IMG/VR virus record: IMGVR_UViG_3300027816_000051
Span: 186,001 to 250,000 of that record
Reading direction: 5' to 3' (one strand)
Length of the DNA stretch: 64,000 nucleotides
Each line of letters starts with the position of its first letter. The first letter of the stretch is position 1. Of the stretch, positions 495 through 63,858 are shown piece by piece. The position numbers and the translations under genes are program-made. The notes below the pieces were generated by a model. The model did not search any database. It saw only the letters and a list, made by a program, of their open reading frames with translations, and was not told where the DNA came from.

Positions 495-527
495 GTTTAC
501 ATACGATATTTATAGATAAAAGAAAAA

Positions 528-23933: not shown

Positions 23934-24133
23934 TTTTAACCCTGTAATCCAGACATTTTTTGTCGTAAGGAATTTTTCTCAGATATATACGAATGTATGA
24001 CAAGAAATCCCGCTGGTCGTATTACAATCCATAAAAGTGGATTAAAGTGGGAAATTGTGGGACATAGTAGGGGATTGACCCTTGTTCGAAATAAGAGTTA
24101 TATTTTTATATTTTCAGAAAAACAGATGTAAAT

Positions 24134-49992: not shown

Positions 49993-50610
49993 ATGAAAAA
50001 AGTTTTTTATTTATTACCACTCGTGGTATTCGTCACAATCGGAGCGGTCCTTTCATTTACCACCGAGGGTCAAACAATCGTTCAACAGATAAAACCAAAT
50101 AAGGTTATCTACATACAACCAATGGGTGATGTGAAACAAGAGTATTTGGAATTGGTAGAAAAGACCGTGGAATCTTTTTATGGTTTTGAATGTATTGTAA
50201 ATCCTAAGGACCCTTTAACCAATAATCTTTTGGCCGAAAGTAAAACAAGGTATTCTGCCAATAAGATACTAAGACAATATAGAGGGAAAGATAACTATCT
50301 AATTTTAACCGAGAAGGATATTGCAACACCAAGTCGTGGATATCCTGAATGGGGTGTGTTAGGATTGGGTTACAGACCTGGTAGTGTATGTGTGGTATCA
50401 ACGTTCAGAATGAAACGTAATGTTAGTGTGGATGTAATTAAGGAGAGAATAAAAAAAGTGTCCATACATGAAGTTGGACACAATTTAGGTTTGGACCACT
50501 GTACAAATCATCCTGAATGTTTAATGAATGATGCCAATGGTACAATCAAACAAGTTGATAGAGAAAAGATGTGGTTGTGTGATAGATGTAAACAGATTAT
50601 TGGTATGTAA
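49993..50610 (+). CDS. Archaemetzincin-like (M54) zinc metalloprotease with N-terminal anchor
   Basis: HEVGHNLGLDHC, CLM, LCDRC. Confidence 0.88.
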   Translation: MKKVFYLLPLVVFVTIGAVLSFTTEGQTIVQQIKPNKVIYIQPMGDVKQEYLELVEKTVESFYGFECIVNPKDPLTNNLLAESKTRYSANKILRQYRGKDNYLILTEKDIATPSRGYPEWGVLGLGYRPGSVCVVSTFRMKRNVSVDVIKERIKKVSIHEVGHNLGLDHCTNHPECLMNDANGTIKQVDREKMWLCDRCKQIIGM

Positions 50611-50612
50611 CC

Positions 50613-52196
50613 TTAGGTTGATACCATCTGAATTTTATATGTCCTTGCAATCTGTTCGTAATTGTTCTTATTGATATTTTTAAAGACCGACCTCTTATAT
50701 ACAACTTTGTTGGTTTGACTATCTCGGATTGGTCCTTGGAAATTCCAAACAATTAAATCTTTTTTAGTGGTTGGGTCTTCTATGGTCATACCAACTTCTC
50801 CGTCTATATAACTAAGACCTTTAACACGGAATTGCATTACCATATCATCCTCAACATTTGCTTCGGCTTTAAAGTTTGATAGTACATTGGATAATACCTT
50901 TTTGATAGATTCACTAATAATACTTTCAGCCATGGTTGAAGTTTCATCATTTCCACTCAATTGTTGGGCTAACATCATAGGACTTTTACAAACTTCACCA
51001 TCACCACCCAATTGTTCGAAATATGTTGGTGCGTTTTGAACGAGATAACTTGTTCCTTTATCACCCATTGCAAATACTCTTGCACCTTTGGCTAATTTTT
51101 GAACCCTTGGGTCTTCAATGAATTTAGCGGGAACCCCAACACATCCATAACTTTGATTCGCATTTGCGATTAATTTAATTGAGTTCAAATATTCTTTTGG
51201 TACCTTACCCGCAGATAAGTCGGCTTTTAATACGTTTCTTAAATCTTCACTGGCTGTTAGTCTCCCTTCAATATTGGGAATACCGTGAATCGCGGCAGCC
51301 ATTTGTTTACCCCCTTGGTCTTTCAAATTGAATACATTTTTACCTTTACCAGTATATCCCGTATTACTACCTAAACTTGATATGTTATAAATGCCCTTTG
51401 CTAAAAAACGTTCTTTGTAGTGGTCAACAACAAAATAAGCAGCATCGGCTATACATATTTTTGATGACTCATCCCATCTTCTTCTTGAGTCTTTTACACA
51501 GGATTCTTTTGTTGTAAAATTACTTGCGGTACAAAGACGAGGAGACGCTTCTAATTTTTGACCTTTTGCGTCATCACCGGGTACCGGACTATTTTTACAC
51601 CAATCCGCGTGAGTATAACTTTTACTATCTGATATTGATTTTTGTTCATTAGCACCATCAACAACTTGGGTGTGAAGTACGTATTTACTACCTGTATCAA
51701 AAAGATATATCAAATTGTACTTTGGGTCGTAAACGAAAAACGGTTTGTCGTTTAATTTTCTTTTTTCAATGTATGTTAATTCAGCATCGATTCTTGGGGT
51801 ATAGTTATATTTTGTACCTACAGTTTCGGATTTCTTTTCCAATTCTGATTTTTGTTTAGCAACTGGATTTACAACAATTGGTTTGGTTTGTAGATTGTCT
51901 TGATATCCAGCATAACCTCCTTGTTGACCAAGTCTACCCGTATTTAAACCCGTAAATTTCTTCACAGGTTCCACCGGTTTTGTTGAACCGAATACTTTTG
52001 TTTTGATTGCTTCTTTTCCCGTACCGGTGGCTAATCTATATGTTTTTTGGTTTTTTAATTTATAATAGTAGTTGTCACCATCTTTCATGTAATCGTACTT
52101 ACCATCATAATTGGTGACATAGGTTTTCTGTTCGTTGATAACTGATTCGACAATATTAACTAAATCCGACTCAGTGAGTCTTATTACTTTTCCCAT
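50613..52196 (-). CDS. Leader-bearing protein with L,D-transpeptidase (YkuD)-like domain
   Basis: MGKVIRLTESDL leader; PFFVYD..IYLFD, AIHG, SYGCVGV. Confidence 0.65.
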   Translation of the reverse strand: MGKVIRLTESDLVNIVESVINEQKTYVTNYDGKYDYMKDGDNYYYKLKNQKTYRLATGTGKEAIKTKVFGSTKPVEPVKKFTGLNTGRLGQQGGYAGYQDNLQTKPIVVNPVAKQKSELEKKSETVGTKYNYTPRIDAELTYIEKRKLNDKPFFVYDPKYNLIYLFDTGSKYVLHTQVVDGANEQKSISDSKSYTHADWCKNSPVPGDDAKGQKLEASPRLCTASNFTTKESCVKDSRRRWDESSKICIADAAYFVVDHYKERFLAKGIYNISSLGSNTGYTGKGKNVFNLKDQGGKQMAAAIHGIPNIEGRLTASEDLRNVLKADLSAGKVPKEYLNSIKLIANANQSYGCVGVPAKFIEDPRVQKLAKGARVFAMGDKGTSYLVQNAPTYFEQLGGDGEVCKSPMMLAQQLSGNDETSTMAESIISESIKKVLSNVLSNFKAEANVEDDMVMQFRVKGLSYIDGEVGMTIEDPTTKKDLIVWNFQGPIRDSQTNKVVYKRSVFKNINKNNYEQIARTYKIQMVST

Positions 52197-52302
52197 GTTT
52201 TTTTTCTATATAAATATCATAATCAGTCAGAAATTATGAACCTCGTACGCCGGAACCGGGAATTTTCTTAAAACGTAATATTTATTGGAAATAAAGATTA
52301 AT

Positions 52303-52581
52303 ATGAAAAAAAGTATAAAATTAACCGAAGCCGAATTGATAAAGGTGATAAAAAAGGTTATTAAAGAATCGAATCTTTCTGAATCCATGTTACCAGGAAC
52401 TTACGCCATGATGGCAGCAGAAGAAGCCGCATCTAAAGTTTCACAAATGTTAATGAACGAATATTCAAGATTTGCCGGACCTGAACAAAAAGGGTCTATT
52501 AAGAATATGTTTTTGAAAATGTTTTGTGAACGTCTTGAAAGTATCATCTTGAATAAAGATGAAGAAATGGGTCAAGATTAA
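52303..52581 (+). CDS. Small leader-bearing protein
   Basis: MKKSIKLTEAELIKVIKKVIKE. Confidence 0.6.
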   Translation: MKKSIKLTEAELIKVIKKVIKESNLSESMLPGTYAMMAAEEAASKVSQMLMNEYSRFAGPEQKGSIKNMFLKMFCERLESIILNKDEEMGQD

Positions 52582-52593
52582 AAAGAAATAATC

Positions 52594-52716
52594 ATGGCAA
52601 AGGCAAGAAAAGAACACCCCAAACCCAAAAGTAGAAAATCAGTAAAAAAGACATCTCGTAGAATCGAAAAGAACAATGAGATGTTGAGAAAGATTTGGGA
52701 AGAAATGCGTAAATAA
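52594..52716 (+). CDS. Very basic 40-aa peptide (not in the ORF track)
   Basis: MAKARKEHPKPKSRKSVKKTSRRIEK... fills the gap between two genes. Confidence 0.45.
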   Translation: MAKARKEHPKPKSRKSVKKTSRRIEKNNEMLRKIWEEMRK

Positions 52717-52731
52717 AAACTATTTGTAAAC

Positions 52732-53208
52732 ATGGGACAAAGAATTATCATATCAGAAGAAGATAAAAACCGTATAAAAGGTTTATACGAACAAACCAGT
52801 AGTAAACCATTTAATTTCTTCACATATAAGGACACCGTACACAATATGATTGAATCCATGACATCTTTAATGGAAAACATTGAGAGGTCAAAACTGTGTC
52901 AATCATTGGACAATCAACTCCAACCGACTTTTGGTTTGGTGGACGATTTGGTTGCAAGAATGGCGGCAGATAATGGTATGAGTGAAGGTGAGTCTATTAA
53001 GTATGTTTACGATACTTGGAAACAACAAAAAACAGGTGGTATGCCACTTTTAATGAAACTAATTGGTGGTAACGTAAGTGTCTCAAAAGAAATGGTGGAC
53101 AAATTATATGCCCACATTAGAACCAAACAAAACGGAGCGTTATTAACCTCCATCATATCGGACATATTTGGAAGTGCCGGTATTAAACAAATACCAATGT
53201 GTTCTTAA
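52732..53208 (+). CDS. Leader-bearing hypothetical protein
   Basis: MGQRIIISEEDKNRIKGLYEQ. Confidence 0.65.
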   Translation: MGQRIIISEEDKNRIKGLYEQTSSKPFNFFTYKDTVHNMIESMTSLMENIERSKLCQSLDNQLQPTFGLVDDLVARMAADNGMSEGESIKYVYDTWKQQKTGGMPLLMKLIGGNVSVSKEMVDKLYAHIRTKQNGALLTSIISDIFGSAGIKQIPMCS

Positions 53209-53221
53209 AATATTTATATAC

Positions 53222-53782
53222 ATGGGACAAAGAATTATCATATCCGAAGGGGACAGAAAACACATAAGAGGTTTGTACGAACAACCAACTTCAACACCTG
53301 AAGAAAACACACCATTTTTAGAGTGGGCGGAAAACGCTGAGATTACACCATTTATTGCACCAAACCCATATAGTGGTGGTGATTTGAAATTAGGTGTACA
53401 AATTAAAAGTTCAACCGGTGAGGATTTATCTAAAATAAGTCAAACCGCAAACCAAAAGACAATCATAAACCTAATTGAAAGAATGGATATCATTACCGAA
53501 AACGGACAGGTTGTTCATACTTTCACAACCGAAGAACAAGATGGAAGTGGTAGTGGTTTATTTAATTTCTCAACGTTTAAACCCACATATGAAATAATCG
53601 ATAACTCATTTGTTGTTTACACCACCATAAGTGAAAATTCTGAGGTGATTCAAAAACTTAAACAGTTTACAAATAAAACAAATAAATTCATTGTTACTGT
53701 TACCCCTCGTCTATCAAACGATTTATTAAAGACTGGTTCCAAATTATTCAAAACCAAGTCAAACATATTAATGGTAAACTAA
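53222..53782 (+). CDS. Leader-bearing hypothetical protein
   Basis: MGQRIIISEGDRKHIRGLYEQ; TATTTATA upstream. Confidence 0.65.
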   Translation: MGQRIIISEGDRKHIRGLYEQPTSTPEENTPFLEWAENAEITPFIAPNPYSGGDLKLGVQIKSSTGEDLSKISQTANQKTIINLIERMDIITENGQVVHTFTTEEQDGSGSGLFNFSTFKPTYEIIDNSFVVYTTISENSEVIQKLKQFTNKTNKFIVTVTPRLSNDLLKTGSKLFKTKSNILMVN

Positions 53783-53808
53783 TATTTATAAAAAAACATT
53801 AAAAAATT

Positions 53809-54135
53809 ATGGCAAACAAAATTGAATTAATTGATTTATTGACAAGACTATATGATTACATGGAAAATCGTGCGGATGCAGACGGTAGTTCAGAAGGGTA
53901 TGTTGCAAACGAGGAAATGGGTTTAATGGGTGAAATTGATGATATGTTACATGCGTTGGGTCAAAAAGGTTTTGGTAGTGATGTCAGAGCGTCCCTTGAT
54001 TCAAAATACAAATTCGGTGGTTTCAGTTTAAATGAAAACTCAAAAAACAGTAGTAAGAAAAAGGTTATTAAATTAAACGAATCAGAACTGATTAAGGTGA
54101 TTAAAAAAGTTATTAAAGAAAACTCAAAAATATGA
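53809..54135 (+). CDS. Hypothetical protein with the leader-type motif at its C-terminus
   Basis: Ends KKVIKLNESELIKVIKKVIKENSKI. Confidence 0.6.
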   Translation: MANKIELIDLLTRLYDYMENRADADGSSEGYVANEEMGLMGEIDDMLHALGQKGFGSDVRASLDSKYKFGGFSLNENSKNSSKKKVIKLNESELIKVIKKVIKENSKI

Positions 54136-54794
54136 AACCAAAAACATTAAACGAAGAGATTAACCGTATTAAAAACATCATGGGTTTCATTAATGAATCC
54201 ATGGATGAACCTACTGGTGAAACTCAAGAATTTAACGGTAAAACCTATCCAAGTCACCACGGTAGTCCCTTTGATAGAGGTAGTGCTGATAGTTGGTATA
54301 GCCGTGGAACCAACCCACATAAAAACCATCCTGAATATTCCGAAGATTTAACCCCCGAGGAAATCGATGCGTATTATGCTGGATTCTATTGGAATGAGAG
54401 ACATGGTGACCATAAAGATTATGGTGATGATGACGATAGAATGAGAGATGATGATTTGGATGAATCTAATCATGAATTAAATGAAGATGAGGTAAACTAT
54501 AATATTAATCGAGCTATCCAATGTTTCTTAAATAAGAAAGGTATTAAAGATGATGCCGGTCAACCACTAAAGATTGATGGTTCTATTGGTAGATTACCTA
54601 ATTCAAAATCAGCTCAAGCCATTGCAAAATACCAAGAAAAACTTGGTGTTTATCCTGTGGATGGTGTTTGGGGTCCTGATACCATGGAAAAAATGCCACC
54701 GAAAGATTTGGCGATGTATAAAGATTGTAAATCTGAATATGGTGACATATTCGATAAGGGTCTCCACATGTTGGGACTCGACGAAGAAAAATAA
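54132..54794 (+). CDS. Leader-bearing protein with peptidoglycan-binding domain
   Basis: IQCFLN..LKIDGSIG..AQAIAKYQEKLG..VDGVWGPDT. Confidence 0.75.
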   Translation: MKPKTLNEEINRIKNIMGFINESMDEPTGETQEFNGKTYPSHHGSPFDRGSADSWYSRGTNPHKNHPEYSEDLTPEEIDAYYAGFYWNERHGDHKDYGDDDDRMRDDDLDESNHELNEDEVNYNINRAIQCFLNKKGIKDDAGQPLKIDGSIGRLPNSKSAQAIAKYQEKLGVYPVDGVWGPDTMEKMPPKDLAMYKDCKSEYGDIFDKGLHMLGLDEEK

Positions 54795-54848
54795 AATTGA
54801 AACCCTCCACTCGGAGGGTTTTTTATTTGTAAAACTATTTATGGTGAG

Positions 54849-56000
54849 ATGAAAATAATTATTTCAGAATCACAATTCATAAAACTTAATCAATCAATAT
54901 CACAAGAAAGTGAATTGAATGAGAACCTATTGAGGTATTTTATGGGTGGTTATAAATCCGCAAAAGATTTCGCGAAACTATTAAGAACAAATAAAACGAT
55001 TTCATCAGAAATTCAAAACGTATTCAAGGACCCCGTCATGTATGGGAAATTTAATTTAGTTGGTGTTAAAACAGTAGACGATTTCGCAAAATTAATTGAG
55101 TCTAATAGATATACACCAAAATTGAAAGGTCAGTTTGAACTTTTTATTTTAAAATCCCCGAAAGTTTATCCAAATCTAGTGGATATTTCCGCAAATTCTT
55201 TAGTGAAGAACAAAACGTTTTTAGAAAAATTTAGACCAGAGATGATGCAAGGTGAATCGGAATTTAGAATACAATTAAAAAAATCACGATACAACGATTA
55301 TGCTATAAATAAAATTGTTGAGAAAACTAAACATCTAATCAAAAAATCAACAAATCAATTTACATCAGCATTAGCACCAATTCAAGCCGAAATCGGGACA
55401 TTAAAACCCGATTATGTAAAACTTTTTGGTATTGAGAAGTATGATAACTTGGTATCAGCACTATTGACTAATAAAATAAATCAGACTCAATTCATCAATA
55501 CTTTAAGAAGAACAACCGGTAATACCAAAAAAGTTGGTAGTAATATGGTTAAAGTGTTTAGGGCGGGACCTAAGAAAGATAATTTTTTCTATGTTAGTCC
55601 TAGTAAAAAATATGTTACAAAAAACTATGCGTCAAATAATCCAAACGCTGTTCAACCTATGTATGTTAATTTGGGTAGAACTTTAGATTTAACTCGTTTA
55701 GACCCAAGAGCGGTGAAGATGGACTCTTTTGTAAAATATTTAAAAGATTCGGGTGTAAAATTCACAAAAGAAGAAGAAATTAAATTATTAGGTAAATTCC
55801 TCAAACCACAAAGTAAAACATCATTTGGAAAAAGTTACCATGACGTACAACTGTGGCACATAATTAACACATCACCCGAAATCGCGAGTGCAGCATCAAG
55901 AAGTGGTTTTAATTCAATTAAACAATTTGAAACATCATCATTCGCACCAGATGCGTGGAATAAAGGTGACTTTTCATATTTTATTTTGAAACAACCTTAA
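54849..56000 (+). CDS. Leader-bearing protein with C-terminal ADP-ribosyltransferase-like domain
   Basis: VFRAG, FFYVSPSKKY..Y, PMYVNL..LDL, GFNSI. Confidence 0.45.
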   Translation: MKIIISESQFIKLNQSISQESELNENLLRYFMGGYKSAKDFAKLLRTNKTISSEIQNVFKDPVMYGKFNLVGVKTVDDFAKLIESNRYTPKLKGQFELFILKSPKVYPNLVDISANSLVKNKTFLEKFRPEMMQGESEFRIQLKKSRYNDYAINKIVEKTKHLIKKSTNQFTSALAPIQAEIGTLKPDYVKLFGIEKYDNLVSALLTNKINQTQFINTLRRTTGNTKKVGSNMVKVFRAGPKKDNFFYVSPSKKYVTKNYASNNPNAVQPMYVNLGRTLDLTRLDPRAVKMDSFVKYLKDSGVKFTKEEEIKLLGKFLKPQSKTSFGKSYHDVQLWHIINTSPEIASAASRSGFNSIKQFETSSFAPDAWNKGDFSYFILKQP

Positions 56001-56233
56001 TCTTATTTTATTTGTTTTTATTGTATTGGTCAAAAAAGACCATTCCCCATCCGATAAAGACAACCCCTAAAATAATATACGGTAAAATCATAACATTTGT
56101 TTTTACATAAGATATCAATATTATTTTAATAAACAAAACAATTCTCAATCTACGTAATTAAGAAACAATAAAAAGACCGTCTTTGAAAGATTTTTTTTGT
56201 TTTACCTAATATTTATTAGAAAAGAAAATTATC

Positions 56234-56764
56234 ATGTATAAAAATTTTAGAGTTTCAGAAGAGGAGAAAAAACAAATTCTTGAAATGCACCAATCAAATG
56301 GATATAACGCCGCAAGTAATTTAATTAACGAACAAGGTGGACAAGACCCCGCTTGGATTAAACAATCCGACTCAAATCTTAATTTTACTTCAAAAGCAAA
56401 AATGGGAATTGAGGATGGAACTCAGGCGACTTATGTGGCTGGTGGGTCGGGAGACGACAGTTTTGTAATTATTATCCCAAAAGGAAGTAAATTTAAAGTA
56501 TCTCCAAGTGGTTCATTCCTTTTGTCAATAGGATATCTTGTGAGTAAAACCGCACTATTTCAAAATGGACTTCAACCCGCAACACTTTTCACTGATAATT
56601 TAGCAGTGTCAAAAGCACTTCATAGTGGTAAATTAAATGCAAGGGCGGTTAATATTGCAGGAACTGTTGATGGAAATATAATTTATGAGGGGGGTTCAAC
56701 AGCGTTTAGATTACCTAACACTGGTGAAGCTTTATCTCAGAGAATTCAAAAATCTTTTGCATAA
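56234..56764 (+). CDS. Leader-bearing hypothetical protein
   Basis: MYKNFRVSEEEKKQILEMH..LINEQ. Confidence 0.65.
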   Translation: MYKNFRVSEEEKKQILEMHQSNGYNAASNLINEQGGQDPAWIKQSDSNLNFTSKAKMGIEDGTQATYVAGGSGDDSFVIIIPKGSKFKVSPSGSFLLSIGYLVSKTALFQNGLQPATLFTDNLAVSKALHSGKLNARAVNIAGTVDGNIIYEGGSTAFRLPNTGEALSQRIQKSFA

Positions 56765-56785
56765 GTAAAAACATTTATTAAATAT

Positions 56786-56814
56786 AAAAGGGGAGTTAAA
56801 CTCCCCTTTTTTTT
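56786..56814. terminator. Bidirectional terminator (near-copy at 58785-58809)
   Basis: aaaaggggagt-taa-actccccttttt between convergent genes. Confidence 0.85.
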
Positions 56815-57355
56815 ATTTTACCAATATCATAAAATTATAGGTCTTATCACTGTAATTCTGTGAGAAAAAAACACCAACCGTTTTTGAAGACGGATTTGTT
56901 AAATCGGAAAACAAATCAGAATCTAACGACATAACATCTAATAGATAATCACAAAACTTTAATTCTTTATTTTCAAAGTGCGCAACATACCCATACTCAC
57001 TGAACAATCCGTATGTTCCCCATGTAAATCCTTGAGATAAAGGTAAACCATTTAAATTGGATACTGTGAGATAATCACTAATATCACAACTGAAGGTCAC
57101 CTCATTTACACCGTTTTCACTTCTTAAGTTATTAATTGACGTTAGAACACTTTGAATAACTAATTGTTGGTTGAGACCATATTCGGTGATTGGGGATGTC
57201 TTATCTTCTTGTAAAGGTATAATCTTAATCGACCAATCACCGTTATCCACATATGTAATAATATCTGATTTAAATCTTTTCTGAATATCAGAAGTTTGAC
57301 CAAAAGAGTTTAGTACCATTACCAAACTAACACACAAAACAACTACATTTTTCAT
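56813..57355 (-). CDS. Secreted protein with degenerate CAP-like domain
   Basis: Signal peptide; INNLRSENGV, LTNPSSKTVGV. Confidence 0.45.
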   Translation of the reverse strand: MKNVVVLCVSLVMVLNSFGQTSDIQKRFKSDIITYVDNGDWSIKIIPLQEDKTSPITEYGLNQQLVIQSVLTSINNLRSENGVNEVTFSCDISDYLTVSNLNGLPLSQGFTWGTYGLFSEYGYVAHFENKELKFCDYLLDVMSLDSDLFSDLTNPSSKTVGVFFSQNYSDKTYNFMILVK

Positions 57356-57491
57356 AACTTTTGTTTTAATATTTGAACAAAGTTATATATATTTTTAATA
57401 TATCCAAATTTTTTTTGAAATATTTTTAAAAAAAAATAATCATGGGTGTCTAATATATTTCTTGATATTTATATTATAAAGAAGAAAATTC

Positions 57492-58784
57492 ATGAGAAAA
57501 GTAATACGATTAACAGAATCGGACTTAGTGGAGGTTGTTAAAAATATTTTATTAGAACAAAATTATTCAGAGATACAAGGAACCACTGACCCTACACCAA
57601 TTGCAAAACTTTCGGTTTTAACTGATGCTGGTCTACCGGCTGATAATAATAATTTTAGGGGGAGATGGGTTTTAGAACAACCAAACATAGGTAAAACTTT
57701 TAGTGAAACAAAAAATTTAAGTCTATTTAGAAATTTAACACCAAAATCACCCGCTGGTGGTGAGAATTATATTGAGATGATGGTACAAAAATTTATACCT
57801 AATGAACTAAATCCTGATAAAACAATTAAAAAGAAAGGTTATCCCGATACGAGTACCCCACCTGTTGTAGAATCTTTAACTAATAGTGGTTCAAAAACAT
57901 TTAATGTTAAATACAAAGACCCCGATGGTAAACATACTTGGAGTCTCATTAGGATAGTAGCATCAGGTAATGGTTTGTTAGCCTTATCTAGAGCGTTATT
58001 AGAAGCTCAAGGAACACCAAATAAAATTACAATTGGTATGTCACAAACTAAAAGGGCTAGCGGTAGTTATGTATATAATGCGGCAAAAATTGGTAATATC
58101 ACACCAACGTTGAATCTAATATCGAATATGGTAACCGCATCCATTATTACTAAGAGTGGGTTACTTTCTCCAACATTAAAACAATACGTCAGTGGTGATA
58201 TGGTTAGTATTGGTACATATTTTAACAGGTCTAACGAAGACATTGCAAAATTAATCGCGAATTCGTTATACTTTTTTGATACATTTTTTATTCCCGAAAA
58301 CGAAATTCAGGTTTTCAGAAAAAAAACAGATTCGTCAGGAAAGTTACTTTTACCAAACTATAATTCTCAACCTTTTTTAGATTTGATAAACACAATGCCA
58401 GTGTTTAATGACATCCAAGGGTTGGTGGATGGACAAGGTGGATACCAAAAATGGAAAAATGTTGAACCAGAGGTTATAAAATTATATGACAAATATAATG
58501 AATTAATTAAAAATGCTGTTGTTGAACAATACAAGAAAAGATTATTAGCATTTTTTACTGATGTTTATAAAGACGCAAATCAAGCAAATCAACTTGTAAG
58601 TTCGACACAATTTAGGTCTGCTAGTATAAAAATTGAGGGTGCATTTAACAACGCGGTCGAAGGTGTGAAATACACAGGTACGGTAAAAATTGATAATGCA
58701 ACATCAAAAACAACGGCTAACACCTATGAAGTCGGTAAATCAAAACCTATTACAAATACCCCAAAACAACCTAACCAAAAATAA
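57492..58784 (+). CDS. Leader-bearing hypothetical protein
   Basis: MRKVIRLTESDLVEVVKNILLEQ; TATTTATA upstream. Confidence 0.7.
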   Translation: MRKVIRLTESDLVEVVKNILLEQNYSEIQGTTDPTPIAKLSVLTDAGLPADNNNFRGRWVLEQPNIGKTFSETKNLSLFRNLTPKSPAGGENYIEMMVQKFIPNELNPDKTIKKKGYPDTSTPPVVESLTNSGSKTFNVKYKDPDGKHTWSLIRIVASGNGLLALSRALLEAQGTPNKITIGMSQTKRASGSYVYNAAKIGNITPTLNLISNMVTASIITKSGLLSPTLKQYVSGDMVSIGTYFNRSNEDIAKLIANSLYFFDTFFIPENEIQVFRKKTDSSGKLLLPNYNSQPFLDLINTMPVFNDIQGLVDGQGGYQKWKNVEPEVIKLYDKYNELIKNAVVEQYKKRLLAFFTDVYKDANQANQLVSSTQFRSASIKIEGAFNNAVEGVKYTGTVKIDNATSKTTANTYEVGKSKPITNTPKQPNQK

Positions 58785-58814
58785 AAAAAGGGAGTTTAAA
58801 CTCCCTTTTGTTTT

Positions 58815-59255
58815 TTATAAACCGGCTTCCCAAGTTATAAGATGGTCATCTTGGGGTAAAGAAACTTTCACAGAGTCCTGTCCAATAAATTTAATGTAAC
58901 CATTTAACTTATCACCGATAATTTGAATGGTTATGGTATTCATGTCGTCATTTTTGTAGTATTGTGAAACTTTATAACCACGACATTCACCTTTTAGGTT
59001 CATAACAATCACGGAATCTGGTTTGATATCCATGGGTGTTTTACGTCTCACCAAAATACGGTCGGCATAAATCAATGGGTCAGTTATTCTTTCTTCAAGA
59101 TTATCATCCTCCATTGGGGTTATCTTCAACCCATTCTTGATTTCAACCAACTTAATTGGATAAATCAAATCCACCGATGAATCGGTTTCGTTTTCTTGTC
59201 CAAACAATACCACTGAAGACAAGATGAAGACGGCGATTAATGATAATTTTTTCAT
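58815..59255 (-). CDS. Secreted hypothetical protein
   Basis: Bacteroidota-type signal peptide ending FG-Q. Confidence 0.6.
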   Translation of the reverse strand: MKKLSLIAVFILSSVVLFGQENETDSSVDLIYPIKLVEIKNGLKITPMEDDNLEERITDPLIYADRILVRRKTPMDIKPDSVIVMNLKGECRGYKVSQYYKNDDMNTITIQIIGDKLNGYIKFIGQDSVKVSLPQDDHLITWEAGL

Positions 59256-59378
59256 GACTTTAATTAATTTGTTGATTCAAAGGTATGGCGACTTTTAGAA
59301 TATTCCAAATTTTTTTCAAATATTTTTAAAAAAAAATCGTAACTAATTCAAAATCAACTTATTAAATTTGAAAATATT

Positions 59379-59717
59379 TTACCAAAATAGTTGTATACAT
59401 ATCATTGCCACTGCTAAAATCAAGGTAATTACGGTCTTTAAAGTCATAACCTCGGAAAATAACCACATAGACATAAAGGTGAAAACAATCATTCCTGACG
59501 CAAAACCTATAAGTCTCGCTGGCCATAACTGAAACCCAAAATATGTTACAATAAGTCGAACTGATTCTAAGGTCAGTAACATTGCGGGTACCCCAAAAAT
59601 AAAAAGACTAATTATTTTGTTATCGTTCATCCATTTATATTTCAAAGGTCCCTGATATTGTATAAATGTTAAAATGTGAGCACAAATAGCATAGACTAGT
59701 CCTAAAATTAAATTCAT
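59379..59717 (-). CDS. Small four-TM membrane protein (SMR/DMT-like topology)
   Basis: Four hydrophobic helices in 112 aa. Confidence 0.6.
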   Translation of the reverse strand: MNLILGLVYAICAHILTFIQYQGPLKYKWMNDNKIISLFIFGVPAMLLTLESVRLIVTYFGFQLWPARLIGFASGMIVFTFMSMWLFSEVMTLKTVITLILAVAMICIQLFW

Positions 59718-59812
59718 GTATTAAAGATACGAATTATTTCTATCAAATCAAAATATAAAAAATATTTTAAAATTTTTTTGGATATTCCAAAAATATGTTT
59801 TATGTTTGTGGT

Positions 59813-60484
59813 ATGAAAAGATTGATTCTGATATTATTATTGGTGAAGTCACAAATTGTTGTCTCTCAAACAAATCGTATCTCACAAGACTCTATTAATA
59901 TCTATTTTCAAAATATTGTCAACGAGTATAGGGTTAACAATAACCTAAGTAGTTTATCTATTGATACCACATTAAGTCCTTTTACAAAAAATTGGTCGGA
60001 GTACATGTTTAAACAAAATTATTGTGGACATGGTGTTGGCGACGAATCATTTGAAAATCGAGCAATTAATTTTGTATCTATAAGAGAACTTTATTGTGTT
60101 GAAAACGTGGCGGGTCCGTGGGATTTTACCAAAGACTTACCATATGATGTTGAAGACCCAAGTTACACATATTATACTAAAATTGGATTGGATGGTCTCG
60201 ATTACAAATACAAATTAACCAGCACCGAAATACACACTTTATTGGATGTTGAAAATAAAATAGGTGAAGGTGTAAACACCAACAAAAATATTGCAGTTTT
60301 CGTTTTTTATCTATGGAAAAACTCACCATCTCACAACGAAGCGTTATTAGATTATCAAACAACTAAATTCTATGTTTCCATAACATATGTTGGTACAAAA
60401 ATAACAGCGTCGTATTTAGCCACAAGTTCCCCGAAACCAATAAGTAAAAAAAGACAGGGATGGTTAAGTAAATTATGTCGTTAG
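59813..60484 (+). CDS. CAP/SCP domain secreted protein
   Basis: VNEYRVNNNL, CGH, ENVA, WKNSPSHNEALL; promoter TTTG-N20-TATGTTTG at 59777-59808. Confidence 0.8.
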   Translation: MKRLILILLLVKSQIVVSQTNRISQDSINIYFQNIVNEYRVNNNLSSLSIDTTLSPFTKNWSEYMFKQNYCGHGVGDESFENRAINFVSIRELYCVENVAGPWDFTKDLPYDVEDPSYTYYTKIGLDGLDYKYKLTSTEIHTLLDVENKIGEGVNTNKNIAVFVFYLWKNSPSHNEALLDYQTTKFYVSITYVGTKITASYLATSSPKPISKKRQGWLSKLCR

Positions 60485-60525
60485 ATTTATAACAATTAAA
60501 TGAGATATTTATAAATAAAAAAGTC

Positions 60526-60987
60526 ATGACCCAAATTATAGTAACAGAAACGCAGTTAAAGAACCTCACAAGAAGATTAAACGAAGATTCTATGGATAGT
60601 AAGTATAGAATGGAATGTAAAGCCGACGTTGATTATTATAAAGTAATGTACAACGGTATGGAAATTGAATATGTATATCCATTAAATATTAACGTAAATT
60701 TTGACATCGATTTAGAGGGAAGAAGTTATGGTATTAAAAGTGTATCCGTATATAATATCGTTGGTCCATCTGAAGTAGAAATGGAGATAGAATACTACCC
60801 TGAAAATAGTGATGATTCAGTAGATGAAACCGTTGTTGTGCCACTAAATTGGGATAATGTTGTAATAGATAAGGATGAGAATTTGGGTTATATTGGTATT
60901 GGTGATATTATACAAATTTCATTGAAAAATGATGAGAGTGGTAAAATCGTTTGTGATACCATTACAGTAAGTAGTTTCTCTATATAA
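60526..60987 (+). CDS. Leader-bearing acidic protein
   Basis: MTQIIVTETQLKNLTRRLNE; TATTTATA upstream. Confidence 0.65.
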   Translation: MTQIIVTETQLKNLTRRLNEDSMDSKYRMECKADVDYYKVMYNGMEIEYVYPLNINVNFDIDLEGRSYGIKSVSVYNIVGPSEVEMEIEYYPENSDDSVDETVVVPLNWDNVVIDKDENLGYIGIGDIIQISLKNDESGKIVCDTITVSSFSI

Positions 60988-61118
60988 TCTTTACATTTTT
61001 TTAAAGTAATCGTATACTTATAATAGACCTTGTGGTTGAAGTCGAAGTGTCCTCGTGATATTTGAGTTGGAATTGATACCAACGAATTCGGGTTCAAATA
61101 CAAAAAAATATAAGGAAT

Positions 61119-61913
61119 ATGAATTACACAACCTCAAACAGGTATGCTGTACCTCAATCTTTTATTACAAGAAGTAAACAAAGATTAAAACAGCACGTAG
61201 ACACCGTATACATGAATAACGGTGATGAGTTCGAAATCGAACTTTACAATCCCACACAAAATAAAGTTTTAGCTAAGATTGAACTGAATGGTAAATCCAT
61301 CGGTAATGGTATCATAGTTCGTCCTGGTGAAAGAGTTTTCCTCGAAAGGTACTTAGACGAAGCGAGAAAGTTTTTGTTTGAAACTTATGTTGTAAATGGG
61401 AATAATGAAGAAGTCCAAAAATCCATAGAGAATAATGGTGACGTTGTTGTCAGATTTTACGATGAAGTATCAACATACCCGTATTATGGTAGTATTCCCA
61501 CTTGGAATAGTAATTGGAATAATAGTGGAACCCTTAGTTATCCACCGGGTGTAAGAACCTTTACAACAAATAATATGAATTCTATTAGTTCTTCATCATC
61601 TAATTATTCATATGTGAATGATACCATCACCAGTAGTATTGATGTGAACCTTAACATTCCAAAATTAAAAAAGAGTAAAGAAAGACACATTGAAACTGGT
61701 AGAGTTGAGAAAGGTTCTGAGTCAAACCAAACTTTTGTTTATGACAACAGTAATTTTAACTCTTTTCCATGTAAAACAAATTGGTGGAAAATAAAACCAA
61801 ATTCAACCAAAGTGATGGTTCGGGAAGATTTAACTGTTTACTGTACTGAATGTGGCTCAAAAAGAAAAAAAGATTCTCATAAATTTTGTCCCCATTGCGG
61901 AACAAAATATTAA
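61119..61913 (+). CDS. Hypothetical protein with C-terminal zinc ribbon
   Basis: YCTECG..FCPHCG. Confidence 0.7.
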   Translation: MNYTTSNRYAVPQSFITRSKQRLKQHVDTVYMNNGDEFEIELYNPTQNKVLAKIELNGKSIGNGIIVRPGERVFLERYLDEARKFLFETYVVNGNNEEVQKSIENNGDVVVRFYDEVSTYPYYGSIPTWNSNWNNSGTLSYPPGVRTFTTNNMNSISSSSSNYSYVNDTITSSIDVNLNIPKLKKSKERHIETGRVEKGSESNQTFVYDNSNFNSFPCKTNWWKIKPNSTKVMVREDLTVYCTECGSKRKKDSHKFCPHCGTKY

Positions 61914-61936
61914 AATAAACTAATCACAAGGTCTAT

Positions 61937-61963
61937 GAAGGGGTTACAGGTTGTAACCCTTTC
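61937..61963. terminator. Hairpin between convergent genes
   Basis: gggttac-aggtt-gtaaccc core stem. Confidence 0.7.
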
Positions 61964-62257
61964 TTATTTAAAATCAACAGGTATTGATTTTATATCACTA
62001 ATCGTGATATTTTTTAAACCCAACGTACCGTGTGAAATTGGTGCGAATACACCTTGGGTATGTAGGAATTGAAAATAATAATATAGGTACGTTGGGTCAA
62101 TTTTGTTAAGGTATTCTTCTTTTACTTTAACACCAATGTTCTCTTCATAAAACTCCTTTGAGGGTTTACCGACACTTTGTTCGGAACCTTTTCTTTGTAA
62201 CCAAAAATCGGCTTCGGGAAAATTGGTTTTAAATATACATACATCTCCTATTCTCAT
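61964..62257 (-). CDS. Small protein resembling a type I R-M specificity (HsdS TRD) domain
   Basis: IGDV, RKGS..VGK, IDPTYLYYYF, GT..KNITISDIKSIPV. Confidence 0.5.
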   Translation of the reverse strand: MRIGDVCIFKTNFPEADFWLQRKGSEQSVGKPSKEFYEENIGVKVKEEYLNKIDPTYLYYYFQFLHTQGVFAPISHGTLGLKNITISDIKSIPVDFK

Positions 62258-63858
62258 AATTCTGAAAGTCTATCGTTTAAATAACTGTTGAAATCGTTAT
62301 CATCAATATCTGGTGACCATCTGTCGTCAATATAGAATCTTGGTTTTTCATAGTACTCACCTAGTAATTCATGAAAAACACATTGGGCATCATCGTCACA
62401 TTTTTCAAAAAACTCATCCATTTCATCTTCACCATAACCCATGTTATCTATTATGTTTTTTAAATTAATTCGTATGGTTGCACCTCTATCATTTAGACTT
62501 AAAACATCTCCGTAATCACTAAGTGCGTTTCGTAGTTGCTTCATTGCATAATCATAGTAAGATGAATTTGCGGAATCGGAAAACGCCGAACCTAATGCAC
62601 CTCGAACTTCATAGTTATCGTCATACTCTTCTATTAATTCATCTATAGACATGTTTGGTTCAAATTCTTCACCTGCTCTATCTCTAAGATAATCAATGAT
62701 TGTTCTTTTATTATCTTCGTCTGCATGGTATTCTAACGCAGATTTCCAATCATCATAATACCCATCAGTTAATTCCCATATATCACCTGATAATAAAGTC
62801 TCGATAAAACCTATTTTTTTTGTACGACCACTGGCATCTCTCGATTGTCTAATGGTCCAATCCCCCTCAACGTAATATGGAACAGAATCCGGTTCAATAT
62901 CCCAATCAAAAACCGTATCGGGTTCTTGAAAATCTTGGGTTATACCCATCTTCTGTAGTTTTCTTTTTAGTTTACGAGTGTTGAATATTTCAGGTTTAGA
63001 TTGATATATCTGTGTAATTTGTTCATCAGATAAATCGGCAATACTGAAATCATCACCACTATTGTATTCACTACCAAAACCTTTTACGATGTCTGTATTT
63101 AAAATTAAATCAACAACATAGGGATAAAATTCTGGTTTTGGTTTACTATTTTTAGGACCTTTTAATTGATAAACAATCCCATCCTCATCACCAATCGCGG
63201 CGGTTAAATGACTTTTGTTGACTGTGTAATTATCTTTAAGTTTTTTTGTTTCTCTTAACGAGAATATCGTGTTACTTGAATTTGTTCTACCACAGTGACC
63301 CATGCGGTTACATTCTTCTCTTGAATCATTCGTATTTAAATCCACCCAATAGAAACCAACACCGTCTTTATTTCTGTAGTCTTTTACGATGTCGTTTTTT
63401 TCAACATAATTAATATCTCCTTCTCCTGAAGTTAACTCTTGGTGCCACTTTCTTGATTCATTGTAAAGTTGACCAAAATTTAAGTTTTTATTATCACCCA
63501 AATTTCCGTTTAAACCAATGCGTATCCAGTCCATTATTGATACGATATTACTTCTCATACCTCTAACACCAGCACTTTTATTTATTGCGTCGATACCCAT
63601 TTTTCTTCTATACTCAGGGTCTTTTCTAAAAGTTTCTCTGGCTTGTTTTTCTTCATCTTCAGGTACCGCACTCATCATATGTTCTAATCTTTGTTGTGCG
63701 AATACATCGATTAATTTATTGGCTAATATGATTGATAACGGACCCCCCAATTCTTCTATTTGGTCAGCATTATCTTGACTCAAACCAAGTTTGTTTACCA
63801 ATATATCTTTCCTATTGGCTTCAAGAATTAATTGCTCAATTAAATTTATTGTCTTCAT
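62254..63858 (-). CDS. Large leader-bearing protein with PcfJ-like motif
   Basis: MKTINLIEQLILEA; SRKWH, EECNRMGHCG, IFSLR, QLKGPKNSKP. Confidence 0.5.
   Translation of the reverse strand: MKTINLIEQLILEANRKDILVNKLGLSQDNADQIEELGGPLSIILANKLIDVFAQQRLEHMMSAVPEDEEKQARETFRKDPEYRRKMGIDAINKSAGVRGMRSNIVSIMDWIRIGLNGNLGDNKNLNFGQLYNESRKWHQELTSGEGDINYVEKNDIVKDYRNKDGVGFYWVDLNTNDSREECNRMGHCGRTNSSNTIFSLRETKKLKDNYTVNKSHLTAAIGDEDGIVYQLKGPKNSKPKPEFYPYVVDLILNTDIVKGFGSEYNSGDDFSIADLSDEQITQIYQSKPEIFNTRKLKRKLQKMGITQDFQEPDTVFDWDIEPDSVPYYVEGDWTIRQSRDASGRTKKIGFIETLLSGDIWELTDGYYDDWKSALEYHADEDNKRTIIDYLRDRAGEEFEPNMSIDELIEEYDDNYEVRGALGSAFSDSANSSYYDYAMKQLRNALSDYGDVLSLNDRGATIRINLKNIIDNMGYGEDEMDEFFEKCDDDAQCVFHELLGEYYEKPRFYIDDRWSPDIDDNDFNSYLNDRLSEL

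Follow-up and report, generated by a model that had tools for sequence, protein, structure and literature searches.

A leader of two classes on unrelated proteins of an uncultured T4-like jumbo phage, a candidate capsid-targeting propeptide

The 64,000-nucleotide (nt) stretch of DNA analyzed here, "the window," comprises positions 186,001 to 250,000 of one 288,260-bp virus contig from IMG/VR, which is rated 92% complete and has a G+C content of about 33%; coordinates marked "genome" follow the numbering of the whole contig. About 20 open reading frames (ORFs) of this contig begin with one of two classes of a leader of 22 to 23 residues, and most of them are located at 50.6 to 60.6 kb of the window and just beyond its end. 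The class A consensus is MKKVIRLTESDLxxIVKxVIxE, and the class B pattern is roughly hhhISEE(D/E)KxRIxxLxE. The structure predicted for the leader is a short strand followed by a T/S-E-x-D/Q helix cap and an amphipathic helix, with (I/L/V)-x-E at the helix end (residues 20 to 22); a second triplet, L-T-E, is located at residues 7 to 9. In the model of the 430-amino-acid (aa) protein starting at position 57492, the leader is a low-confidence helix appended to a confidently folded body. The part of each protein outside the leader is designated its "cargo" here, and ORFs are named by the position of their start. The leader genes and the elements around them, with ATATTTAT as a promoter-like element, are as follows in window coordinates:

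506-513, plus strand: ATATTTAT, followed by a 77-aa class A ORF at 528-761 (E 1.6e-11)
50613-52196, minus strand: 527-aa class A ORF, with ATATTTAT at 52210-52217, 13 nt upstream (E 2.5e-13)
52278-52285, plus strand: ATATTTAT, followed by a 92-aa class A ORF at 52303-52581 (profile match)
52718-53208, plus strand: variant upstream element TATTTGTAA and a 158-aa class B ORF at 52732-53208
53210-53217, plus strand: ATATTTAT, followed by a 186-aa ORF at 53222-53782, with a class B leader near-identical in its DNA to the leader of 52732
53782-53789, plus strand: ATATTTAT, followed by a 108-aa ORF at 53809-54135 with a class A leader at about 54058-54129 and the stop four residues later (E 1.3e-5)
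54132-54794, plus strand: 220-aa ORF with a class B-like leader and PG_binding_1; it has no promoter of its own, and its start overlaps the stop of 53809
54799-54822, plus strand: terminator-like hairpin directly before the promoter of 54849
54836-54842, plus strand: TATTTAT, followed by a 383-aa class A ORF at 54849-56000
56209-56216, plus strand: ATATTTAT, followed by a 176-aa class B ORF at 56234-56764
57465-57472, plus strand: ATATTTAT, followed by a 430-aa class A ORF at 57492-58784
60505-60512, plus strand: ATATTTAT, followed by a 153-aa class A ORF at 60526-60987 (E 1.5e-9)
62254-63858, minus strand: 534-aa ORF with two L-I-E-type triplets in its N terminus, a doubtful member
56786-56810, 58786-58809, and 61937-61963: further hairpins similar to that at 54799-54822

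The GC skew and the AT skew flip their sign at about position 24,000 and at about 50,000 to 52,000 of the window, matching a switch of the coding strand, and the leader cluster starts at the second of these positions.

A check of the ORFs showed that the start coordinates used for them are true ORF starts. A regular expression alone picked the listed ORFs, with most of its matches at genome 236.6 to 256.5 kb. When a profile of 11 seed leaders was scanned over the six-frame translation of the genome, as the earlier note on this DNA had proposed for a hidden Markov model, the members were recovered with E values of 1e-9 to 1e-2, sharply apart from the noise, and five members past the window end (genome 253.7 to 256.5 kb) and two near genome 283.4 to 283.8 kb were added. 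An independent search with an alignment of 20 leader sequences (A2) gave 13 matches in the genome, with E values from 2.5e-13 to 0.03. The two profile searches agree, and when the cargos of 22 leader proteins, taken from residue 29 onward, were compared pairwise by BLASTP, no match at E <= 1e-3 was obtained, which bears out the previous claim of a recurrent leader on at least 10 unrelated ORFs.

Class A starts are those of 528, 52196(-), 52303, 54849, 57492, and 60526, in addition to the copy at the C terminus of 53809, which had been noticed before and was recovered by the alignment search. Class B starts are those of 52732, 53222, and 56234, with looser representatives at 54132, genome 181119, and genome 283772. 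Near-identity between the DNA of 52732 and that of 53222 begins 14 nt before the ATG and ends with codon 21, beyond which the two are unrelated, again as described earlier. In contrast, the ORF at 63858(-), which had been included as a member, was missed by both profiles and has no TATTTAT, so that it is counted here as doubtful. The leader at 528-596 contains Ser-Ile-Lys where all others have Thr/Ser-Glu-Ser; the Ile replaces the otherwise invariant Glu-9, and Glu-22 is kept.

Where the leader ends could be read from its relatives in other viruses. IMG/VR and prokaryote genomes were scanned with an exact degenerate DNA pattern for residues 1 to 12, which leaves residues 13 to 22 unconstrained by the search, and the counts of leaders and carrier contigs given below derive from the IMG/VR matches listed for this pattern. 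At least 120 IMG/VR stretches were among the matches listed, many of them on contigs of 150 to 412 kb. The unconstrained positions were still conserved in the 135 leaders retrieved: Val-16 was present in 116, Ile, Leu, or Val at position 20 in 133, and Glu-22 in 128 of them. From residue 23 on, conservation collapsed into an acidic, Ser/Pro-rich linker (E, D, S, and P), so that the boundary of the leader is located after the Glu residue. The median length of these ORFs was 130 codons. In prokaryote genomes, the same pattern gave a single match in 596 Gb, on one 3-kb contig of a metagenome-assembled genome, which indicates that the leader is virus-specific and not located on integrated prophages.

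The leader is under selection as a peptide. Positions with the same amino acid in ten class A leaders share the codon in 46% of the pairs, compared to 48% predicted from the codon usage of the genome. Since the sharing of synonymous codons matches the random expectation, selection acts on the peptide and not on the DNA or RNA. Orthologues of the 430-aa protein, with identities down to 43%, keep the leader as well as the body. Three other candidates were rejected: an element at the level of DNA or RNA, because the leaders keep their amino acids but vary at random in synonymous sites; a ribbon-helix-helix DNA-binding domain, because the second helix is not conserved and conservation ends at residue 22 or 23; and a Sec or Tat signal peptide, because the charged and amphipathic leaders have neither a hydrophobic core nor a twin-arginine motif.

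An exhaustive profile search over 1.84 billion protein cluster representatives (E <= 1e-3) matched the leader profile to 2,174 protein clusters. The match begins at residue 1 in the great majority of the best 150 of these 2,174 clusters, and the database consensus is MKKVIRLTESDLVRIVKRVINEQ. Scans of about 120 leader proteins against Pfam and of 10 against PHROGs gave no model that matches the leader motif, and the searchable literature yielded no mention of it. A Pfam scan of 101 database leader proteins found any domain match in just nine of them, among these PG_binding_1 in two proteins and single YkuD, OmpA, tail-fibre chaperone, and GNAT domains. Proteins with two to four copies of the leader, or with class B and class A in tandem, were also observed (P0018, P0019, P0046, P0024; L019 5471-6142; L021 10001-10897), and such multi-leader proteins are possible polyproteins, as far as their sequences tell. 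The leader-rich region of another freshwater phage contig contains a gene of the IS605 OrfB/TnpB type, which is Cas12f-like (L023 1725-2894).

Leaders are exchanged between cargos. In the relative L019, a 254-aa protein is composed of a homologue of the N-terminal domain of 53809 (85 residues, 79% identity to the window ORF), a class A leader, and a cargo homologous to that of 53222. This same cargo is positioned in the window behind the class B leader copied from 52732, and both junctions of the rearrangement fall exactly at the leader end. ORF 53809 seems to be what is left of a gene composed of domain, leader, and cargo, as preserved in L019. Among the 81 homologues in the 527-aa family, a class A leader opens 59 and a class B leader most of the remainder, and a tandem of the two classes is present in three. 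As these homologues may carry either class or both, the two leader classes appear to be functionally equivalent.

The cargos themselves scarcely match Pfam or PHROGs. His304 and Ser-x-Gly-Cys352, a signature resembling that of L,D-transpeptidases (YkuD), are invariant in 81 of 81 members of the 527-aa family, many of which carry PG_binding_1, and a language-model search with this family, which is a lead only, pointed to PG_binding_1/YkuD clusters. The 527-aa family is probably a peptidoglycan-active enzyme. PG_binding_1 was also found in ORF 54132 and in genome ORF 181119. The C-terminal half of the 383-aa protein (54849) is possibly an ADP-ribosyltransferase, for which the evidence is weak but concordant: Pfam ART-PolyVal was matched with an E value of 0.09, the Atlas feature score was 0.88, the TM value was 0.51 over residues 228 to 382, and R238, S250, and E361 are invariant in the homologues. 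An AlphaFold model of this protein from 5 sequences had a mean predicted local distance difference test (pLDDT) value of 49 and was too poor for a structure search; a profile search against the PDB gave nothing relevant. The well-folded model of the 430-aa protein (57492) had no significant match in the PDB when searched with Foldseek.

The upstream element ATATTTAT is present in 62 copies genome-wide. The start of an ORF of at least 40 codons follows within 45 nt downstream of 51 of these 62 copies, compared to 15 of 62 for the reverse complement, and this orientation bias indicates a real, oriented, promoter-like element. Because ATATTTAT also precedes the genes for terminase, scaffold, and sheath, a tube-sized ORF, and a gp25-like baseplate gene, it is a promoter of structural genes. 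These genes are presumably late, and hence the element should be a late-type promoter. The earlier note had placed TATTTAT shortly upstream of most leader genes and taken it as an element that defines the family. The first part held: 16 of 22 leader genes have TATTTAT at an upstream distance of at most 45 nt, compared to 43 of 338 other genes (odds ratio 18, Fisher p 1.4e-9). The second part did not, since TATTTATA is a general promoter of this phage, presumably of the late type; with 62 copies of ATATTTAT throughout the genome, TATTTAT alone does not define the family.

In the other IMG/VR carrier contigs, TATTTAT was found at most 45 nt upstream of 95 of 132 leaders compared to 478 of 1957 control ORFs, and the spacing between TATTTAT and leader had its peak at 14 to 19 nt. 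The sense-strand TATTTATA, for instance at window 57465-57473, is the exact reverse complement of the T4 late promoter TATAAATA. The orientation counts, 51 versus 15 of 62, indicate that the element acts in the TATTTATA sense here. Three of four exact metatranscriptome contigs end not more than about 12 nt from the start codon of a leader gene; these are short assembled contigs and too weak for mapping transcription starts. Sigma-70-like sites were not enriched (61 versus 67 expected). Terminator-like hairpins were enriched, with 21 sites compared to 7.3 +/- 2.7 in shuffled sequences, and since several of them are located directly before a promoter-leader unit, the leader genes look like insulated cassettes.

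The genome encodes a head module of the T4 type, which is located far from the window and contains the genes for the large terminase, the portal (PHROG 213), two small ORFs, the protease, the scaffold, and the capsid protein. The prohead protease of 227 aa is a Peptidase_S77 (gp21-like; Pfam PF03420; 79.7 bits, above the cut-off; genome 28951-29427), and its gene, at genome 28855-29538, is placed between that for the portal and those for the acidic scaffold and the gp23-like capsid protein. The scaffold-like protein (417 aa) is very acidic, the gp23-like major capsid protein comprises 587 aa, and a gene for a tail sheath of the T4 type follows further along the genome. In the capsid protein, the triplets LYE-51 and INE-60 are positioned just upstream of the segment aligned to residue 27 of mature T4 gp23. 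The maturation cut would be expected in this region, and the same triplets end leaders. Between portal and protease, a 246-aa ORF (genome 27364-28104; L002 7364-8104) is situated behind a late-type promoter and contains K-L-T-E-S near its N terminus, which resembles the leader core; it could encode a processed core protein like gp67 or gp68 of T4.

The leader occurs together with the S77 protease. This protease is encoded in 15 of the 16 largest carrier contigs of IMG/VR, the sole exception being 49% complete, and all 9 of these contigs that are at least 90% complete encode it; the number of leader genes per large carrier contig ranges from 4 to 19. The 31 mid-size carrier contigs are all fragments of 12 to 45%, and 15 of them contain S77. 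As the near-complete contigs all have S77 and the smaller ones are fragments, no complete leader-bearing genome without the protease was found. Leader ORFs adjoin the protease gene in three relatives. They are directly beside S77 in two 412-kb genomes (L158/L159; G015, G016), in the place that the scaffold gene takes in the genome of the window; a scaffold homologue was not found beside the protease there, and class A leader proteins of 109 to 164 aa are present instead. In these two genomes, leader proteins might be components of the core. The third relative has a leader ORF between the protease and scaffold genes.

The closest cultured relatives of the capsid protein are those of Flavobacterium phage immuto, Rhodothermus phage RM378, and Microcystis phage Mel-JY01, with an identity of just 34 to 41%. 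Comparison with deposited phage genomes gave no match for the accessory region (megablast) or a 26-residue consensus leader (tblastn) and one match at chance level (E 0.5) for the 57492 protein (tblastn); a search for related loci with the 57492 protein alone returned identical copies only. By these comparisons, the lineage is one without a deposited isolate.

Some neighbors of the leader genes use a different route. The interspersed ORFs 49993-50610(+), 56813-57355(-), 58815-59255(-), and 59795-60484(+) carry signal peptides of the classical Sec type, with ...SQ or ...GQ at the end, and the first of these ORFs also has an HExxHxxGxxH zinc-protease motif. The style of these signal peptides may point to a Bacteroidota host. 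A separate endolysin-type gene has no leader; it contains PG_binding_1 and GH19 in a relative and was recognised in this genome by its N terminus. This gene, at genome 256,572-257,399 (L011), has a late-type promoter and an N-terminal PG_binding_1-like sequence, its counterpart in L018 is annotated as PG_binding_1 plus Glyco_hydro_19, and it probably encodes the true endolysin. Because other proteins use Sec signals and the endolysin-type gene is leaderless, the leader is not the export or lysis route of the phage. At window 61119-61913(+), a 264-aa ORF with a C-terminal zinc ribbon (Zn_Ribbon_1, E 1e-4) has neither leader nor TATTTAT, and the strong hairpin at 61937-61963 follows it.

To understand the meaning of the leader, these data can now be combined. 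The leader is more likely than not a capsid (prohead) targeting propeptide, similar to the capsid-targeting sequence (CTS) of T4, in a clade of uncultured freshwater T4-like jumbo phages. Since binding, cleavage, packaging, and ejection are all steps that we infer, the confidence in this reading is only slightly better than even. A promoter of the ATATTTAT type would serve the leader genes as well as the structural genes, and the leader would dock the cargo onto the scaffold core during prohead assembly. The S77 protease of the gp21 family would then cut after the conserved Glu-22, perhaps also after Glu-9; if both are cleavage sites, the leader at 528 could be cut at Glu-22 only. The freed cargos would remain in the head and exit with the DNA at the next infection, the known or suspected ones being a YkuD-like peptidoglycan enzyme, peptidoglycan-binding proteins, a possible ADP-ribosyltransferase, and many small orphans. 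Terminator, late promoter, and leader would together represent a DNA cassette, with recombination at the 3' edge of the leader exchanging the cargos. As far as they could be tested, the predictions that the earlier note's proposal of capsid targeting makes for the sequence held, with an S77 protease, an (I/L/V)-x-E end, a promoter of structural genes, swapped unrelated cargos, and, among these cargos, a probable peptidoglycan enzyme and a possible ADP-ribosyltransferase; the family specificity of TATTTAT had to be given up, and the membership of 63858(-) is not supported.

Several points weigh against capsid targeting. A minimal signal for cleavage or targeting could be shorter and would need much less conservation than the leader has; conservation across all 22 residues suggests a docking that is more specific than that of the minimal tag of T4. 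Glu/Lys-rich proteins often contain the triplet (I/L/V)-x-E by chance, and the member at 528 is without Glu-9. About one-seventh of the database matches carry the motif internally or in two to four copies, and one copy in the window is C-terminal. Cargos of 430 to 530 residues would need to pass through the tail. The leader is absent from the closest cultured T4-like, S77-bearing phages, immuto, Mel-JY01, and RM378, which means that the S77 association may only reflect one clade and thus non-independent observations. The leader profile found nothing in the T4 genome at E <= 1, and the same tool gave 13 matches in the genome of origin. A co-fold of the S77 protease with residues 1 to 40 of the 57492 family, listed among these points, had a score of 0.00 and is evidence neither way.

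Alternatively, the leader may be a virion adaptor that binds, by strand addition plus the helix, outside the head interior (at the baseplate, the tail, or the capsid surface, for instance) and is not removed. Recurrent peptidoglycan-binding and enzyme cargos would suit a tail-borne role in entry, one database member has a tail-fibre chaperone domain, the conservation of the leader is well above the need of a cleavage site, and the tail genes share the promoter, too. However, no recognised tail or baseplate protein of this genome bears the leader, and twenty or more cargos, many with fewer than 130 residues, would be hard to fit on one structural site. Such an adaptor is also at odds with a conservation that ends exactly after (I/L/V)-x-Glu and with the position of leader genes next to the protease gene in three relatives, and is considered improbable. 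An equally low probability is assigned to a generic docking or oligomerisation helix for an intracellular partner (a phage hub protein, a chaperone, or a host factor) without any link to the virion. The predicted strand, cap, and amphipathic helix would be a plausible binding module, and proteins with two to four leader copies exist, but such a function leaves the use of a late promoter, the N-terminal position in most matches, the boundary after Glu, and the linkage to head protease genes unexplained.

An unconventional export or membrane-targeting signal to the cell envelope would explain the peptidoglycan-directed cargos, since PG_binding_1, YkuD-like, and OmpA-type cargos recur. It is very improbable for a highly charged, amphipathic leader without hydrophobic core or twin-arginine motif, in a genome that puts classical Sec signal peptides on other proteins; moreover, other cargos look cytoplasmic (the possible ADP-ribosyltransferase, GNAT, zinc ribbons), and the leader is near-absent from cellular genomes, so that no host pathway is known to read it. 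Finally, a functionless peptide, as a relic of descent or as a recombination or translation-initiation sequence kept at the nucleic acid level, is hardly credible: the near-identical DNA of 52732 and 53222 covers promoter and leader alike, and conserved cassettes can drive shuffling in T4-type phages (PMC2839356), but the randomised synonymous sites largely refute a relic, and the leader is as conserved as the body in orthologues down to 43% identity and kept across 2,174 clusters.

Capsid targeting, the reading preferred here, can be extended to a broader one, which is tentative and rather doubtful as a whole. The two interchangeable leader classes might serve as a sorting code throughout the clade, directing more than 2,000 unrelated families into virions, with the terminator-promoter-leader unit as an integron-like capture cassette for injected effectors and the proteins with two to four leaders as polyproteins cut by the prohead protease. 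Such a code would make the leader a ready index of phage-injected effectors, anti-defence and cell wall tools included, and a tag for packaging that is portable. Provided that the leader loads proteins into capsids, its motif of 22 residues would reveal from sequence the injected proteins of a large clade of uncultured 250- to 410-kb phages. These would amount to thousands of orphan families active during the first seconds after infection begins, the stage at which functions in anti-defence and host takeover are expected. The one-tag-many-cargos strategy of T4 would be expanded about 10-fold, plus two interchangeable tags and polyprotein forms, and the cassette structure would explain gain and swap of cargos. 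The leader could become a packaging tag for the engineering of phages of this group.

One tag on many unrelated cargos is already known in T4-type phages (PMC3012670). The CTS of the T4 proteins IPI, IPII, IPIII, and Alt, which is removed by gp21, resembles the leader as a short N-terminal propeptide with an (L/I)-x-Glu end on unrelated, non-essential proteins (PMC3012670, PMC9026906). T4 gp21 cleaves after (L/I)-x-Glu, and the targeting propeptides of T4 comprise 10 to 20 residues (PMC9026906, PMC5694885). Common to both are also a gp21-family protease in a T4-type head module and diverse cargos of which only the tag is conserved. The respective genes are late in T4, and the leader genes may be late as well, given the promoter that they share with structural genes. 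The possible ADP-ribosyltransferase among the cargos recalls Alt, a packaged and injected enzyme of this kind in T4 (PMC5512222). In contrast to the T4 CTS, the leader is longer, with 22 to 23 residues compared to about 10, much more conserved, and divided into two interchangeable classes; it is present on about 20 cargos per genome and in more than 2,000 cargo clusters, it occurs in internal, tandem, and C-terminal copies, and its promoter motif is TATTTATA instead of the T4 late motif TATAAATA.

The head propeptides of phiKZ, 201phi2-1, and SPN3US likewise occur in jumbo phages with a diverged gp21-like protease, which have many head proteins cut after Glu, and the SPN3US paralogues gp53 and gp54 share an identical 15-residue N terminus on diverged bodies (PMC5694885). 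Propeptides there mostly exceed 100 residues and have the motif S/A-x-E, compared to 22 to 23 residues with Ile, Leu, or Val at P3 here; shared N termini there are found within paralogous families, here on unrelated cargos and alongside a head module of the classical T4 type. For T4-type phages, a shuffling of ORFans by cassettes is known as well, namely by PeSL (early promoter plus stem-loop) cassettes, which are short 5' cassettes with promoter and terminator that serve as recombination sites at orphan genes in plastic regions (PMC2839356). Similarly, hairpin, promoter, and leader precede the cargos here, and swaps occur at the cassette edge. PeSLs are non-coding and sigma-70-like early promoters, whereas the cassette here has a late-type motif and a coding leader selected as a peptide.

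Cargo-loading peptides of encapsulins are another short, portable peptide that sends unrelated enzymes into an HK97-fold shell. They are usually C-terminal, uncleaved, and encoded in cellular operons beside the shell gene, and they are not known to resemble the leader in sequence. Compared to these systems, new features are the tag itself, with no Pfam or PHROG model and no literature match, its length and conservation, and its two interchangeable classes. Also new are the internal and tandem forms, the scale of about 20 cargos per genome and more than 2,000 clusters, and the combination of a late promoter and a coding leader as one mobile unit.

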